From Gnetum montanum (lineage: Eukaryota; Plantae; Gnetophyta), in NCBI GenBank assembly GCA_015680685.1, contig MNCI01003159.1:321823-385822 (forward strand): DNA of 64,000 bases, given 5' to 3'. Shown piece after piece: positions 10,804 through 20,379 of the stretch. A program made the translations under genes and the position numbers. Numbering within the stretch: the first letter of the stretch is position 1; the number at the start of each line of letters is the position of its first letter. Under the pieces are notes generated by a model. It did not search any database and was not told the DNA's origin. It saw only the letters and a list, made by a program, of their open reading frames with translations.

Positions 10804-11169
10804 ATGGCGGCCCCAGAGTCATGGGAGGACATGGATGCGCAGCCGCCGTCGTCGAATCCGGGAGCTCATCCGAGATTGAATGCGAACGCGCCGTCCTTCA
10901 ACTGGAACGTGAACGCGCCTGTGTTTGCGCCGCCCATGGGAGGAGCTCACAATCCGTATTACCCTAGGCCTTCGCCTCAGCATTTTTACCCTGGAAATGC
11001 TCCTCCTTCGCCGTATATGCAGCAGCCCCCTTACAGGCAGCGCCCTGCTTACGCGCCAATGCCTGCGTATCATCCTCATCAGCCGCAGCCGCAGCCGCAG
11101 CCGCATCAGCGTCCCCCTGTTATGCATCATCCTGAGGCGCAAGTGCCTTTGAAATCCTCGGTCCCTTCC

Positions 11170-11218
<49 letters not shown>

Positions 11219-14200
11219 AATCCGCTGCTGCCGCCGCTACTCCTGCCCCTGCAAAGCATATCATTATTGGAGCGCCCGCTTCGGCGGATACTGCATCGCC
11301 TGCTGCTTCAAATGCTGATCATGATCAGAAAGCTAAATCAAGTGATGATACGACGCACCAGAAGATGGATATCGATGTTCCGGATGTGTCTGCCAAGGAC
11401 ACTTCTGTGTCGTCTTCTGCTTCCCACAGCGCAGCAGGTCTCATGCGTAATTTCTTATGCAGTCTTTATTGGAAACTACCTGTCCGTATTCTAATGTTAC
11501 GACGATTGAATATTACGGAATACTGTCTACGTTTAATAGTAACACTAAAATGAATTGACGTAGTGTTTACTCTATTTAGCCTGGAGGAATGAAAAGCTAA
11601 CTCGATTTGCTATTGAATGGTCCACAGAGAAGGTGGTGTCAGGCATGAAATCACTCAAGCTCAAGGACAGTAAGGCGGCTCAGGGTAATTTTATTTATGG
11701 CATTTTATTGTTAGGTTATCGGTTGTGCTGTTTAGGAATATTCAACATTTAATTTGTTAGCGTTTGTATATGATGTAGTGGAAGCTGAACAAAAACACGA
11801 AGAAATGCAGGAGAATTTTGAGGACGTAGAGGAGGATGAGGCATTAAAGAAGCCTCACATGAATGTAGTTTTCATTGGTCATGTTGGTATGCGAAATTTT
11901 TCTCATAAAATTATTATGGACTTGATTTTTCTTGGTAGTTTTGAAGTATAAAATTAGGCTTTATAATATCATTGAACATATGCTTATTGGTCGTGCAATT
12001 GTTTTAAAAAAAGTATATAATGTTCATGATAGATGCTGGTAAGTCTACCACTGGAGGACAAATCTTGTTTTTGTCAAACATGGTTGATGAAAGAACAATT
12101 CAAAAGTATGAAAAGGAAGCAAAGGAAAAGAATAGAGAGAGTTGGTAAGATTTTGTCGTTTTCATAACATGGAATGCTATATTCACTGGAATGATATTAT
12201 AGAGATAATGAAGTAGCCTTTGTTTTTCAAAATATGAGATTCAAATCTATGATCTTTTAAACACCCTAAAGACCCAATGTCCTTAATGTAATGATTCGGT
12301 TAGTGTTTCTATTGAAAGCTACTTCATATGTGTGAGTCTTTGTTAACAATTTTGTTAACTTAGGTACATGGCATATATTATGGATACAAATGAAGAAGAG
12401 AGAGCAAAGGTATTATAAAGATTTCAACTGTTATTAGTTTCAAGTATGAATGCACCTCAGAAAAGATTTTTAGTTGCTTCTTAAATTGAAAAAAATTTAA
12501 AACAAATCCTCTTACTTCAGGGCAAGACAGTAGAAGTTGGAAGGGCACACTTTGAGACTGATAGAACAAGGTTCACAATTTTAGATGCTCCGGTAAGTTT
12601 TAACAAGTCCAGTGTTTCTTCTGATTATCCATGTTGCATATTTTAAGGGCAGGAGTCTTCATTTTGTTGAAAGATTATTTTTACCAGCAAACTTCTATCA
12701 TGTTTTATTTCTTTAACAAAGAATTTGAAATTATACCGTTATTACTGGTTTTATTTCCAATGCAATAAAAGTGCTTAAAATTTTTTTTCAAGATACACAA
12801 TTTGAACTTGACAAATGGAGAAAGCTCATAGAGTGAACAAAATAAAATATATCAAAAGGCCTTATTCATTATTGCAATTGTCAATGGAAACTGTGTGAAG
12901 ATATTTATATCATAAAAGTATGTAATTGTTGCATGTAGAAGTTTTCAGAAATAGAGTAAAAGAAATTTTTTGTTGCAGCCAAATGTTGCTTAGCAAGGAG
13001 AGGCACCCAGATTGGCTGAAATGTAGGTTGAACTTATTACATTAATGTGATGGGAGATTAACAATCTTATTGGTCCATCATTGCAAATGCCTTTTTTACG
13101 AACTCTTTTTTTGAGTATTGTTTTTTTAAGTGTTCATTTATTAATATCTGTAATTGGTGTGTTGCATTTATTTTGTTATTTTTAAATAATATCCAAAATA
13201 GTTTAGAGTACTTTTAAATTGCTATGTTATGTTTTTGTTTATGGATTCACTATTTATGCAACTAAAGAACAAACTAGCACATTTAAATTTGACATGCTGC
13301 CTTTTTAGATTTATATGTTATTATTGTTTGTGAGATATTTTTGCCATGATCTAGATTGTTATTTTGTTCATTAGTTGTTGCAAAATCATCAATTTAAAGT
13401 ACATAGCAGATTTTTTAAAAGACAGTAATTTGGCATAGTTGTAATAATGAGATGTTAGCTTAGTGGGAAGAGCTTTGGCATGGAAACCCCAGGTCACAAG
13501 TTTGATTCCAGTAAATAACACTAACATATGGATTAAAAAAAATTTCCATAAAAGGGATTCTGAAATTGTTCTGTCCCATAGAACCAGGAGGGTGTCTTAG
13601 TAGATGTGAGTAAAAATTCAATTTCATAGACTGTAATTTAGAGGGTCAATTCTGAAATTTTTGCTTTTTTACAGGGCCACAAAAGCTATGTACCTAACAT
13701 GATCAGTGGAGCTTCTCAGGCTGATGTAGCTGTGCTGGTATGGTTCTTTGAAATTGAGTTTGCATGAGTTGATTATCTGATGTGGTTAGTTACTCTATTC
13801 TTGTTTGTGCTGAAATTGCAGGTTATATCAGCTCGTAAAGGTGAATTTGAAACAGGATTTGAAAAAGGAGGACAAACTAGAGAGCATGCAATGTTGGCAA
13901 AGACCTTAGGTGTTAGTAAATTAATTTGTGTTGTTAATAAAATGGATGATCATACGGTTCAGTGGAGCAAAGAGAGGTTAGTTATGCCATATGTTTTATC
14001 TGCATGCCAACATATTGATATCAAATAATTAGCAAAATGAAATTTCTTACTTGCATATTCAGGTATGATGAAATTGAGAAGAAGATAAGTCCGTACTTGA
14101 GGGCATGTGGCTACAATTTGAAAAAAGGTATGACTTGAATGATATTTAATAAATTAGTTTGAGAGGAAATTTGTAAGTTAGTGACTAAGACATTCTAGAT

Positions 14201-17200
14201 AACAAGTTTTCTATTGACTGTTAATTCTCGAAAAATTTGTGCTTGTATACAGTGATTAAAAAATTGGCAAATATTAGGAAAATGTTGGCATGTTTAAAAA
14301 AGGCAATATTTTGGAGGTTCCATGTTGCACATCATGTAAATATGCATAGGGAACATAGACAATACAATTAAATGCACAGAAACTAAAAAACATATTAATA
14401 AAGAGCATAATCAATATATAAAGTTTTAACGTATATTACCATAAGCTTAAATACTATTAAGGCTCATTTGTTCACAAAATATAATCCAATGAAGTCTTAA
14501 AATGATGTATCATGTTACATTAATGTCTAATTGTAAAATGTTTACAATATATTAAACATAAATCAACAATGTAACTATAAATCAGATGCATCGTTTGGAT
14601 GTTTGGTGTAGCTCTATCTCCTTTTCCCTTTGACTTCATCCTCTAAAATTGATTTTATTGGGTATCCACCGTAGTAGCTCTATTTCTAAATGTTCATTCA
14701 TGGTTATCAAAGGCTCCTTTTGTAAAGTTACATTAAAAGGCATATCAGCTCTATTCATGAGACCATTGCAAATGCATAAAATGGGTAATCTACATTGTTC
14801 ATAGCTTTATAGGCCTTATGTTCCAACAGTACCATTACTGTTATGGTTTTATCTATCAAGAAGGGTAATACGTTTGTTAGTTTCTATTAATTTTGTTAAT
14901 TTTTAAGGACAATTGTTTTTATGTTCGGTTTCTGTTTTTTTAAAAAATCTTCAATTGAAATAAATTATAAATATTTTATTATATTTGAAGGATGTTTTTA
15001 AAGAAAAAGCTGCTGTTTTTCAGCTTTTTTAAAAAAGTTGGGTTGCTCCAAATTGGTGATTTTTTCATTGGTGACATTTTCCCGAGGTGGCAAAAAAGGA
15101 CAAACTTTTTAATCGCTGCTTGTATAAAATGGGAATGGAGTTCTCAAGTGTTCCTGTTTATTTTTCTATGAGTATGCGTGAGTACATTTTTGCAATTTAT
15201 GAAAAGCTTTTTTAATAAATAAGTAATTTAAGCTACTTCTCTGTATCAGATGTGACATTTATTCCTATATCGGGTCTTAATGGCTCAAACATAAAACAGA
15301 GGCTTCCCAAAAGCATGTGTGATTGGTGGAATGGTCCATGCCTTTTTGAAGCATTAGATGATGTGGAACTACCTCCTAGAGATCCTCGAGGTCCTGTTAG
15401 GTATGTGATTATAGTGTCTGGCCTCAAATTATTTTTCCTTTTCTAAATGGTTTTGTTTTTTTATCCTTTCGTCACTTATGTATTCAGTCCAATTCGGATT
15501 TCAAGATTGCTTTTAAATCCTTTATGTAATGATTGTGACAGTGCTATGGTAAAGTGAGTTTTTATTTTCATTTATATTCGGTTAAGAAATTGCTAGATTA
15601 AGAACCTTTAGAAATAACTTTTGTTTGAATTGTATGTTCCCTTATTGAAATGTATTTCATGTTTGCGATGTTTGGGGAAGATACTTGGTTCAAAATTTTT
15701 GACTTAATTTATCATTACTCTAGTTACATTATATAGAATGGTAAATTTCAATGGAATGAAATTAGTGTATGAGATTACAAGATTTCTCAGCTTTTATATC
15801 AGTCTGCCTAATGGTTTATTTGAAACATGATGCTATTTCAGAATGCCAATCATTGATAAGTTTAAAGATATGGGAACCGTAGTTATGGGAAAAATAGAGT
15901 CAGGGACCATCAGGCAGGGAAGCAGTTTAATGGTGATGCCTAACAAGGTGTGTTCTTTGTTGCCCTGATTAGATCGTTCACATTTTAATACGTTTGTAGC
16001 TATTTCCTGACAGTTTTCTTATGTTGACTAGGCTCATGTGAAAGTTGTTGCTGTATATCATGAAAGTGATGAGGTAAAGTACGCAAGGCCTGGGGAAAAT
16101 GTTCGAGTGAAAATTTCCGGTGTAGAAGAAGAGGATATATCTTCTGGCTTTGTTTTATCATCAATTAGTAAGTTCTTATTTCTATAAACTATAAATCCTT
16201 GTAGTTTTATTACGTGCTAAATTCTATCCACGTGGTGTCCCAGGGATTTAGGGGACATTGCAGTTTCATCCAATTTCTTTTTCAAAATTGTTTCAATATA
16301 GACTGCTGGAAGGTAATCCTGTGACTTGGGATTACAAACTATCACAAGGAGCTATGCCACATTCATATACACTAGATCGTTGACAAGTTGCAAAACATTA
16401 TTTTCTATTGTGCTTCTAACCTTCCACCTTAGTTGCTACAATTCCATCTCAAAGGTTGAGTTGGTTGGGTTGCATGTCTCTCCGCCAATCAAAATGCAAG
16501 TGACGTCTCATCAGTTGTTGATGTATGTGACTACGGCTATTAAAGGAGACCTTTCCTTCTATATATCTTCTTTGTAACATGCTTCGCATTTTTACGTCTT
16601 TTATTGCCAACAATTTGGTTCTATGCTTAATATATATTTATTCTTGACAGATTTTTAATTGATTTTTAGATGCGAATTTTCTCCATGTGGATGTGGTTTT
16701 ATGAGTTGCCATTTTTAGTCCTTGTTGATCCAGAGGCTAGCTTTACAGGCATCCAATCTATAGTCTTGTTTTTTTCTTTTTCTTTTCGCAATGAGGTGGT
16801 AGTTCAACTGATAATGCATTGGTTTGGGAACCAAAATGTTGCAAGTTCAAGCTATGACATAGGTATGGGTAACCTGTGAAGTGGTTTCGGGAGTTAAGGG
16901 AAGAAGCAGGTTATAGTAAACAGATTCTATGATCCTCAGGGCATATAGCTATTTCAAATACCCATATACAAAGCCCGCAAGATTCCCCTTTCACATAATC
17001 ATTTGGAATGGCCAATAAATTTAGCAAGGAAACATTTATGTTGAGCTTTCATTTTATCCTACAAGGCTGTTAAACTTTCACAAGATAGATAAAAATTGTG
17101 TTATTTGTGCCAGGTAAACCAATTTCTGCAGTTACGGAGTTTGACGCTCAGCTACAGATACTGGAGCTTCTAGACCACAAAGTACATTCTTTGGTTTTAT

Positions 17201-17740
17201 TTTTAATCTAAGATCCTGATATATTTGCCTTGATTTATATTTCACTGAAGAGGATTTGTGAATATTAATTTTTGTATTATTTATGCTCAAGGCAATATTT
17301 ACTGCTGGATATAAAGCTGTTCTCCACATCCACTCTGCTGTGGAAGAATGCGAGATAATTCAACTCGTAGAACAAATAGATCAAAAGACGAAGAAACCAA
17401 TGAAGAAGAAACCACTTTTTGTTAAAAGTGGAGCAGTGGTGGTTGTTCGCATACAGGTTAGAGACATAGATAAGCTTTTTAACTTTGCATGGTATTGTCT
17501 ATGCACAGTAATGGTGACCAACAATAATTTACCAGGTTAATGATACCATTTGTGTGGAAAAGTTCTCCGATTTTCCTCAACTTGGAAGGTTCACATTACG
17601 GGATGAAGGTACTAACATTGTAGATGATTTGCCATGCTTTTGTAAATTTTGTTACACGTCTGAATTTCTAAATTTTTGTGATGATTCTTTTAGGTAAAAC
17701 TGTAGCGATTGGTAAAGTTGTCAAGTTATGGACAGCCTGA
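10804..17740 (+). CDS. eRF3: Eukaryotic peptide chain release factor GTP-binding subunit eRF3 (Sup35/GSPT1 ortholog), ~685 aa, 16 coding exons
   Basis: Exons, all GT-AG and phase-consistent: 10804-11437, 11628-11684, 11779-11886, 12033-12144, 12364-12409, 12521-12592, 13675-13737, 13822-13976, 14063-14127, 15250-15400, 15842-15947, 16032-16167, 17114-17181, 17292-17456, 17536-17608, 17694-17740. Motifs: [95 protein letters not shown], and C-terminal [17 protein letters not shown]. The small exon 2 is the least certain. Confidence 0.95.
11170..11217 (+). repeat. (CCTGCT)8 coding microsatellite encoding (Pro-Ala)8 in the eRF3 N-domain
   Basis: Perfect hexamer repeat read directly from the sequence. 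Confidence 0.9.
13444..13620 (+). mobile_element. tRNA-derived SINE, family A2, in an eRF3 intron
   Basis: TAGCTTAGTGG A-box and GTTTGATTCC B-box. Aligns over ~170 bp with 43690-43860. Confidence 0.65.
14250..15118. mobile_element. Non-autonomous hAT element (869 bp) in an eRF3 intron
   Basis: TIR CAGTGATTAAAAA (14250-14262) / TTTTTAATCGCTG (15106-15118), with a perfect 8-bp TSD CTTGTATA at 14242-14249 and 15119-15126. Confidence 0.85.
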
Positions 17741-17800
17741 CTGACTACCATGACCAGCTTCTTTCAGCAATCCCTAAATAATGGCTAATAAATGTACAAG

Positions 17801-17908
17801 GTACAGTAGTGCTTTACACATACAGAGCTTTACACTCTTCTGGTTCTGATCAAAGTTTATGTGATGTTCAAGAAACTCACAATTTCAAATTTTCATTTTT
17901 GTTGACAG
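17801..17908 (+). other. Predicted 108-nt intron in the eRF3 3'UTR, 60 nt downstream of the stop codon
   Basis: Donor AAG|GTACAG (GTAC donors are also used at 17182 and 17609), branch-like CTCAC at 17876-17880, U-rich tract, acceptor TTTTTGTTGACAG|GT. The size matches other short introns of the gene. Confidence 0.7.
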
Positions 17909-20379
17909 GTGCTTTAATTCTATAGAGATTTATGATCTGGCTCTTATAGATATGTTCCTGTTAACTTTTTCTTAAATGAGTTCAGGGAATTGTATCATCG
18001 TTTAAACAAGCAAAGCAGTTTGAATGTTTGAGGGTGAAACACTCGATTTTATTCTCAGTGTTGATCAAATTTATTGTTGATCTAGTTACTTTTTGTTAAT
18101 TCTCTAGCTGAAATTAGTCAGCAGTATTTCTTTTCAGAATTATGCATTTTGGGTCTTGGATTAGCAGTTTCCTTTGATACCTATTCGTACATGAATTGTA
18201 CCGGATATATGTTATTGCTGCCGTTTTAATTTGCAGTTTATTAATATAAATTTGTATAATTTTCGTTAATTTATCGATTTTTATTGCAGTTTCATTTGTG
18301 TTTGCTGGTGATTTGAAAGGGAAGTTCTGTTGTACGTAGTTTGCGTCGTTTTGTTTCAACCGCATACAGGAACTTGGAAATTTCCCTCCTGAAGGGATTT
18401 CTACGCTACAGACCTGTTTCACGTGAACCCTTAATCTCACTAAAATCAGTGTAATACGATCGATGTCGGTTTGCCTGTCTGGGTTTGAATGAATACCAAA
18501 GTGTATGATTCATTAGATTCATCAATATGCGTACAAGAACGTTGTGAATGCAAATGACATTGGAATTGCGGGTGGTGCTGGAACCGAAGTTGGTATTTGT
18601 ATTGGTATTCTGAATTTGCAGTACGGCGGCTAGTTGATTAACTATCTCAACTATCTGTCAACGATTTTAAAATCAGCGGTTACATGATACGAAACGCTAC
18701 TATTCGGGTTTAAAACGTGAAACTAACATGACCGGATAAATAGAAGAATTTATCGAAATTTTAAAGTTGGATATATCTGTTATATTTAACACAATAGTTA
18801 TAGTGTAACATATTTAGCAAATTTGGCTGGAGTGTGAACTAAGCATATTAACATGCAAAACAAATCCTTGGATGTAAAACTTGGAGGCTGTTCATGTTTT
18901 TTTTATTTATGAAGATTTTGATTCTGTTTGGACGCTTGATTCAGATGTAAAACATTGGCCTTTGGCATGTTTGCAATTGGATGGCTTGGTGAGGGTTGTG
19001 ATCTTACATTTATAAGATTAAAAAGATCTAAAGACTCAATGTTCATTTCCCAAGGTAAGGGGTGAAAGCTTAAACTCCCTTAAAGCTTAAACTCTTTTGA
19101 GGGAATGAGGAAAAGCTTAAATCTTTTTTCCAGTGGTTGTATCTAAGCTTGTTCTTATTGACTTTAATAAATTACTGTTGAGATATACATGCTCTTATGT
19201 TTGAATACGTCATCTTAAGATGTTTGGAAGTTAACCTGAATATGCTACGTTTGTTTTTAATTTAAAAAATCTATTCGCGTATGGTCCCAATGGAAAAAAG
19301 AAAGAAAAAATGCTACTGGTTGCTTTAAGCAAATTCCTTTCTTTGAGCTGGAAAACGTTTCAAGCAAATTGTGACTTGTGCACGTAAACCTGAGAAAATG
19401 TTTAGTTACTAACTCATTTTAAATGCAATTTGAATTTATGGGTTGAAAACTTAGGGGTGGGGAAATTTGAAATCTTTAAAAGCATAACTTGGGTAAAAAC
19501 TTCAGATCTGATTCAGTAACAAAGTCTCAAGATTATTCATTAGCAATTTTTGGCATTCTTTTTACCGGAAATTTGTGCTTCCCTGCAGATCGTTGAGGAA
19601 TCAGACTTATCGTTAAATGCAACTTCGATGATGATTATTAGGTGATAGGTTTTCTCGTTTTCTGTCTCTGCAAATTTGGTGCTGTGATGCAATTCGTGGC
19701 GTCACTTGCTAAAGTTGATTGCAAGAGGACATGGTCCTGCAGATTCCACGTCGCCGGAAACCCATGCTTTTTTAACAGCCACATAACTTCTTTACACTGG
19801 TTGACTTTCGCATCAAAAGAAAGAAATATTTTAAAAGAGATTAGGTCATTTGTGGGAGCCGTACCATAAATTTAAAAAGAAAATAAAAGTTTAAGCAGTA
19901 GCGATCTGAATTTAAAGGGAGTGAGGTTGTATTTGCGTTGACTTGTTGGTGGTGGGGCAACTGGGAATTCGGAAATAGTACGGCCGTTATACAACTAACA
20001 CTGTCAACTCCAACGAAGGCCGGGATGTTTCGGGAAAGCAATCACGAGGCTAAGAAATATAAAATAATTTGCTCAGAGCCCCAGGCGCTGAGAAATATAA
20101 AATAAGAAAGAAGTTGAATTTCCTCGGAGCTCGGGGCAGAGGTTATGCTAGCCCATGGGATCTGCTCCACTTCTACTCGTTTCTGGACTCCTCCAGCGCT
20201 TTGTCTTCTTCGCTGTGTAACCATCACCAATGTCTGTCTGTCTAGACGCTCGACGCTTTCGCCAATCGCGGATCATGATCATGGTTCACGGATTCACATA
20301 TACACCTTTCAATTTGCCGATCAGCGAGACTCAGCATATCGAATGCTAAAAAAACGGATCGTCTGCTGTTAAGCCGTGA

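Follow-up and report, generated by a model that had tools for sequence, protein, structure and literature searches.

A spliced 3'UTR intron 60 nt past the stop in eRF3 of Gnetum montanum: an ancient land-plant feature and a candidate trigger of weak NMD

The window analyzed here, a stretch of 64,000 nucleotides of Gnetum montanum DNA (GenBank assembly GCA_015680685.1, contig MNCI01003159.1, positions 321,823 to 385,822 of the forward strand), carries a gene for an EF1A-like GTPase whose sequence places it with eRF3, with Hbs1 and eEF1A as more distant matches. When the exon ORF 13780-14028 was compared with structures (a single exon was searched), the best match was eRF3 (4e-23), followed by Hbs1L (3e-13) and eEF1A (~1e-12), and the full-length relatives of the gene returned by homolog searches bear the name eRF3A. 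An earlier note on this DNA had named the gene eRF3, and this assignment stands. The tblastn ranking placed gymnosperm-type relatives slightly ahead (~64% vs 60%), a difference that is not decisive. The features of the gene, with positions counted within the window, are as follows.

10806..17740, + strand: eRF3 coding region with many introns; ATG at 10806; exon 1 has a PAM2-like N-terminus
17182..17291, + strand: coding intron, a control for splicing, seen in X1-X4 contigs
17457..17535, + strand: coding intron, a control for splicing, seen in X1-X4 contigs
17609..17693, + strand: coding intron, a control for splicing, seen in X1-X4 contigs
17694..17740, + strand: final coding exon, with the TGA stop at its end (17738-17740); acceptor from a contig joint, and reading frame
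17741..17791, + strand: C at +4, 15-codon in-frame extension and tandem TAA TAA (17786-17791), as read from the sequence
17741..17800, + strand: first 3'UTR exon segment, 60 nt, from contig joints; aligns with conifer-like orthologs, with a common donor position
17777..17781, + strand: expected site of the EJC, 20-24 nt upstream of the junction, predicted from the vertebrate/plant EJC model as cited in PMC3711448
17801..17908, + strand: 3'UTR intron, 108 nt, GT (17801)..AG (17907-17908), removed in contigs of four runs
17909..18269, + strand: second 3'UTR exon, to the poly(A) site, from an X3 contig ending in eight untemplated A's
18270..18994, + strand: longer 3'UTR forms or downstream transcription, from an X1 contig reaching 18771 and an X2 contig reaching 18994

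The 3'UTR intron predicted in the earlier note is real and is spliced. Twenty public runs contain all or part of the stretch, and about half of the sampled words or more were found in 13 of them, as is expected because transcripts lack introns. Contigs of runs X1-X4, each run from a different study and under a different organism label, were aligned to positions 16800-19000. Every one of the four runs has a contig in which 17800 is joined directly to 17909 across GT..AG ends. This is the very junction that had been proposed for confirmation by RNA mapping, and these contigs also lack the coding introns 17182-17291, 17457-17535 and 17609-17693. Retention of the 3'UTR intron was seen in none of the contigs listed for X1-X4, evidence of a kind that establishes the presence of the spliced form but neither its amount nor the exclusion of rare forms. 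Chance cannot account for a spliced intron. The RNA label of the runs is only a guess, and one may ask whether the intron was mispredicted or whether the runs are DNA with artefact joints. The probability of this is negligible, as it is refuted by four GT..AG joints within single contigs from four studies, by the poly(A) tail on one contig, and by an upstream intronic contig depth of ~1% of the exonic depth. The spliced 3'UTR measures 421 nt if it ends at 18269, the poly(A) site of the X3 contig, and 923 nt or more to the contig ends; the depth of the X4 contig drops from 865 to 13 beyond ~18213. A search of 17600-19100 against Rfam gave no match and thus no sign of a hosted snoRNA.

The coding sequence closes with TGA (17738-17740); the next base, a C, opens a run of 15 sense codons (17741-17785) that ends in TAA TAA (17786-17791). 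The distance from the TGA to the donor is 60 nt, while the backup stops end 9-12 nt before the junction, with the first of them 12 nt from the donor. All of this matches the description in the earlier note, and by its position the next in-frame stop would be one that does not elicit NMD, as in a 3'UTR of the eRF1-1 type. Open runs of at least 15 codons are found in ~32% of UTR shuffles and at ~32% of local non-coding positions (p about 0.32), so that an extension of this length is expected by chance and carries no weight alone. A role of the extension as a functional peptide was considered and rejected, the peptide not being conserved and the conserved nucleotides lying in different frames.

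The proposal that the UGA-C context is a leaky readthrough signal is weak. The hexamer after the TGA, CTGACT, agrees with CARYYA at +4 only, and the stop context does not match the type II readthrough motif (UGA-CGG or UGA-CUA), a motif that generally needs a 3' structure for efficiency (PMC3159437). No consensus RNA structure after the stop was predicted across eight ortholog cDNAs, and the window segment after the stop folds worse than its shuffles (z +1.37). The C-terminus of the window eRF3 (17720-17740) is at least 4 residues short of the liverwort, lycophyte and most gymnosperm-type relatives, whose longer tails have the form KL-P-x(5-7)-Q/H-E; the Selaginella tail is no longer than that of the window. 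As the window protein ends earlier than these relatives, its stop and stop context are specific to the window lineage.

The distance of 60 nt can be read against published plant thresholds. Reporters tested in N. benthamiana showed no NMD when the intron lay 30 or 40 nt past the stop, and at 50, 60, 70, 80, and 95 nt they showed NMD that rose with distance (PMC3711448); in an earlier plant test, 28 nt gave no NMD and 99 nt did (PMC1693880). Plant 3'UTRs above 350-400 nt are themselves NMD elements (PMC5397192). The window thus has both a spliceable intron beyond the 50 nt needed for intron-based NMD and, at 421 nt in the polyadenylated form, a 3'UTR at or above the length threshold. The claim that the junction would induce NMD is supported insofar as 60 nt falls inside the reporter range, but only at the weak end of a graded response. 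Since the spliced form is the form assembled in four runs, any decay is not drastic. In a differential-expression table of P. patens smg1, no eRF3 gene is among the rows listed, where it may stand under another name, and this is not evidence either way.

To place the intron among plants, orthologs were sought in JGI metagenome contigs by alignment of the 55-residue exon 17292-17456, and 80 plant eRF3 loci were returned, some genomic and some cDNA-like. These loci come without a taxonomy of their own, and several of them were labeled by C-terminal peptides identical to named proteins, which gave Populus (two paralogs), soybean-type and Medicago-type legumes, Asteraceae, and three Sphagnum paralogs; for a further group, called conifer-like here, the named proteins that come closest are those of Ginkgo (70%) and Araucaria (67%). 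The comparison covers moss-type, conifer-like, grass-type, and dicot loci. Where a cDNA could be paired with a genomic locus (at least 97% identity per aligned piece, and at least 98.7% for moss-type pairs), the 3'UTR intron has GT-AG ends in each of the following pairs.

Moss, L031/L046: stop to donor 53 nt, intron 232 nt
Moss, L035/L043: stop to donor 53 nt, intron 205 nt
Moss, L069/L068: stop to donor 53 nt, intron 150 nt
Moss, L057/L047: stop to donor 55 nt, intron 230 nt
Grass-like, L071/L072: stop to donor 25 nt, intron 79 nt
Grass-like, L074/L070: stop to donor 24 nt, intron 79 nt

Three conifer-like cDNAs (L004, L005, and L014) part from the genomic locus L001 at a GTACGT donor that lies 54 nt past the stop and aligns with the window donor. 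The acceptor was not found within ~2 kb of contig L001, and therefore only the donor is defined for conifer-like loci. In dicot genomic loci a consensus donor is predicted 9-25 nt past the stop, directly 3' of a short conserved motif, and the verified grass donor has this motif in front of it as well. One legume-type locus (L048) has GC in place of GT at its predicted 3'UTR donor, ~22 nt past the stop, and may contain a GC-AG intron. Taken together, the loci compared indicate that the eRF3 3'UTR intron is ancient, an old feature of land plants, and this finding is new. The alignment of ortholog 3' ends suggested in the earlier note gives a divided answer. A junction more than 50 nt past the stop, the position relevant to NMD, recurs in moss-type (53-55 nt) and conifer-like (54 nt) loci, but the stop, the hexamer, and the extension vary, and in flowering-plant loci the junction lies at 9-25 nt. 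Because reporter NMD is graded from 50 nt, only weak NMD is to be expected at the distances seen in the window, the moss-type, and the conifer-like genes; those of flowering-plant loci fall outside the NMD range, as reporters at 30-40 nt gave no NMD.

The stop itself differs among the orthologs. Non-flowering loci have TGA-C, TGA-T, or TAA-C, and in flowering-plant loci the base at +4 is A, G, or T. A C at +4 is found in the window, in conifer-like loci, and in most moss-like loci, and in none of the flowering-plant loci; it accompanies a long distance between stop and junction and is missing where the distance is short, an association that comprises only two or three independent lineages. The near-invariant stop context that marks eRF1-1 is thus not seen among eRF3 orthologs, and their extension peptides are unrelated to one another. 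Backup stops before the junction are present in the window, in conifer-like loci, and in most moss-like loci. The second in-frame stop is fixed at +13 in mosses (L022, L028, L043, L046, L047, and L007) and at +16 in conifer-like loci (L001, L004, L005, and L014), and this fixation would agree with selection for a second stop that backs up a leaky first one. In the moss-like pair L068/L069 there is no in-frame stop before the junction, and in its spliced cDNA the frame runs on for 82 codons.

These observations bear on the reading proposed in the earlier note, in which readthrough of UGA-C is an evolved sensor that places eRF3 under negative feedback, parallel to eRF1-1. Efficient termination would keep the EJC in place and lead to decay, and poor termination would strip the EJC and leave the mRNA stable. 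The geometry fits, with 60 nt between the main stop and the junction and 12 nt between the backup stop and the junction, and in non-flowering orthologs the main stop is at least 53 nt and the backup stop less than 40 nt from it. The second in-frame stops fixed within mosses and within conifer-like loci speak in the same direction, and precedents exist in Neurospora eRF1 and in plant eRF1-1 (PMC5397192). Against it stand the match to CARYYA at +4 only, the lack of a type II motif or a 3' structure, stop contexts that vary among eRF3 genes while that of eRF1-1 is almost invariant, the absence of a backup stop before the junction in L068/L069, and the loss of the arrangement in flowering plants. 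What survives of the proposed switch is thus the intron, the 60-nt distance, and the backup-stop geometry, while stop context, conservation, and flowering-plant position tell against it, and we consider an evolved sensor of this kind improbable. In the form of an ancient termination-sensing circuit of non-flowering land plants, with weak EJC-type NMD from a junction at 53-60 nt, its relief where ribosomes leak past a stop that has C at +4, backup stops retained so that readthrough ends safely, and a later loss in flowering plants, the idea likewise appears to be a long shot. If it were true, eRF3 and eRF1-1 would have partner circuits, and the loss in flowering plants would have come about through the vanishing of ~30 nt between stop and donor. 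The 3'UTR is a real one of the NMD type and a useful lead; a purpose-built readthrough switch is an unproven candidate.

Plant eRF1-1 is the closest known system, and the leaky-stop/NMD control invoked for it as a precedent is supported by the literature (PMC5397192). Both genes encode termination factors, and in both the 3'UTR is long and contains an intron that is spliced out, with more than 50 nt between stop and intron, a next in-frame stop near the junction, and a C at +4 (Nyiko et al., 2017; PMC5397192). In eRF1-1, however, the stop is followed by a CARYYA sequence that is almost invariant across angiosperms, the hexamer being a near-invariant CAATCA, and the intron lies 130 nt downstream (PMC5397192). 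The eRF3 hexamer, in contrast, is variable and not CARYYA, and the eRF3 junction lies at only 53-60 nt, in the weak zone, or, in flowering plants, 9-25 nt past the stop. When the whole of Arabidopsis was screened for CARYYA combined with an NMD-type 3'UTR, eRF1-1 alone was returned (PMC5397192).

Between the stop and the 3'UTR donor, flowering-plant eRF3 loci share the motif CAATTTTG, which was found within the first 25 nt past the stop in L006, L010, L023, L027, L036, L058, L070, and L072. As it occurs in different reading frames, it is conserved as nucleotides and not as codons. A version of CAAT plus pyrimidines also precedes the donor elsewhere, by 17 nt in moss-like loci and by 23 nt in the conifer-like ones; in the window (17768-17773) the spacing is 33 nt. 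It is conceivable that the intron has a role unrelated to NMD, such as splicing-dependent enhancement of expression or of 3' end formation, or that a regulatory RNA element lies by the donor; no regulatory meaning would then attach to the stop context, to the extension, or to the distance of 60 nt. In favor of such a role, flowering plants have kept the intron just 9-25 nt past the stop, where its long survival needs no NMD, and dicot, grass, and moss-like loci have CAAT plus pyrimidines, in any frame, at 15-20 nt from the donor on its 5' side. The chance expectation for a 15-codon extension and the lack of retention in the contigs listed are in keeping with it too. It fits poorly with the recurrence of 53-60 nt distances in three deep lineages, with a 53-nt segment that is free of indels across the Sphagnum paralogs and two other mosses, and with plant reporters that do show NMD at 53-60 nt. 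On balance we regard it as unlikely, but the survival of the intron in flowering plants at a non-NMD distance makes another role, or none, a serious rival. A comparable case is found in plant SMG7 and Barentsz, in which the intron-bearing structure of the 3'UTR is conserved and not its sequence, as in eRF3; the NMD-irrelevant proximal intron of SMG7 resembles the intron of flowering-plant eRF3 (Nyiko et al., 2013; PMC3711448). The NMD-relevant introns of SMG7 and Barentsz, however, lie 118-163 nt or more past the stop, and their NMD response has been shown (PMC3711448).

The reading that we tentatively prefer, at a little under an even chance, is that the ancient, spliced 3'UTR intron of eRF3, where its distance from the stop just reaches the range in which plant NMD acts, makes the mRNA a weak standing NMD substrate. 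The identity of the gene, the splicing, the distances, and the conservation of the intron in eRF3 are established by the matches, contigs and loci described above. NMD sensitivity is what we infer from them: with a junction at the lower NMD edge and a long 3'UTR, the mRNA is most likely, or at least probably, such a substrate, and its level would therefore be tied to termination and NMD in the cell. Constitutive splicing of the intron leaves an exon junction 53-60 nt past the stop in the window, moss-type, and conifer-like genes, an EJC presumably deposited near it would elicit weak EJC-dependent NMD, and the long spliced 3'UTR of 421 nt or more would add a second NMD feature. Occasional slippage at UGA-C may let ribosomes continue to the backup TAA and clear the EJC site, though at a basal leak rate only; this leakage would be the sole counter to decay, and both the readthrough and any feedback through it are conjectural.

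In the literature searched, no paper describes a 3'UTR intron of eRF3 or the control of eRF3 by NMD or readthrough. To our knowledge, no mechanism that sets the level of plant eRF3 has been described, the circuit of eRF1-1 being the sole one on record. In Neurospora crassa, eRF1 is reportedly controlled by readthrough and 3'UTR-intron NMD, as Kurilla et al. are said to have described in FEBS Lett in 2020 (cited in PMC10578600). That logic of a leaky stop and a 3'UTR intron in a termination factor is like the one considered here, while gene and kingdom differ. The eRF1-1 paper touches on eRF3 in passing only (PMC5397192). A conserved eRF3 3'UTR intron at the threshold distance for NMD provides a concrete hypothesis that reporters can test, and nature supplies the contrast, with 53-60 nt in mosses and gymnosperm-like plants and 9-25 nt in flowering plants. 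Even if the effect on NMD were nil, the intron and its flanking motif would call for an explanation.

Some further features lie at the other end of the gene. An acidic SWE(D/E) sequence followed by LNANAPSF-type PAM2 repeats, first noted by the earlier reader, lies at the N-terminus in the window (10806-10932) and is also present in the full-length cDNAs of conifer-like L004 (138-300) and moss-type L057 (174-330); the Brassica-type protein P0026 is without it. A hexanucleotide repeat in exon 1 (11166-11215) encodes an alternating proline/alanine run. In the 5' leader, a consensus donor from 10641 onward suggests that the gene has a 5'UTR intron too.
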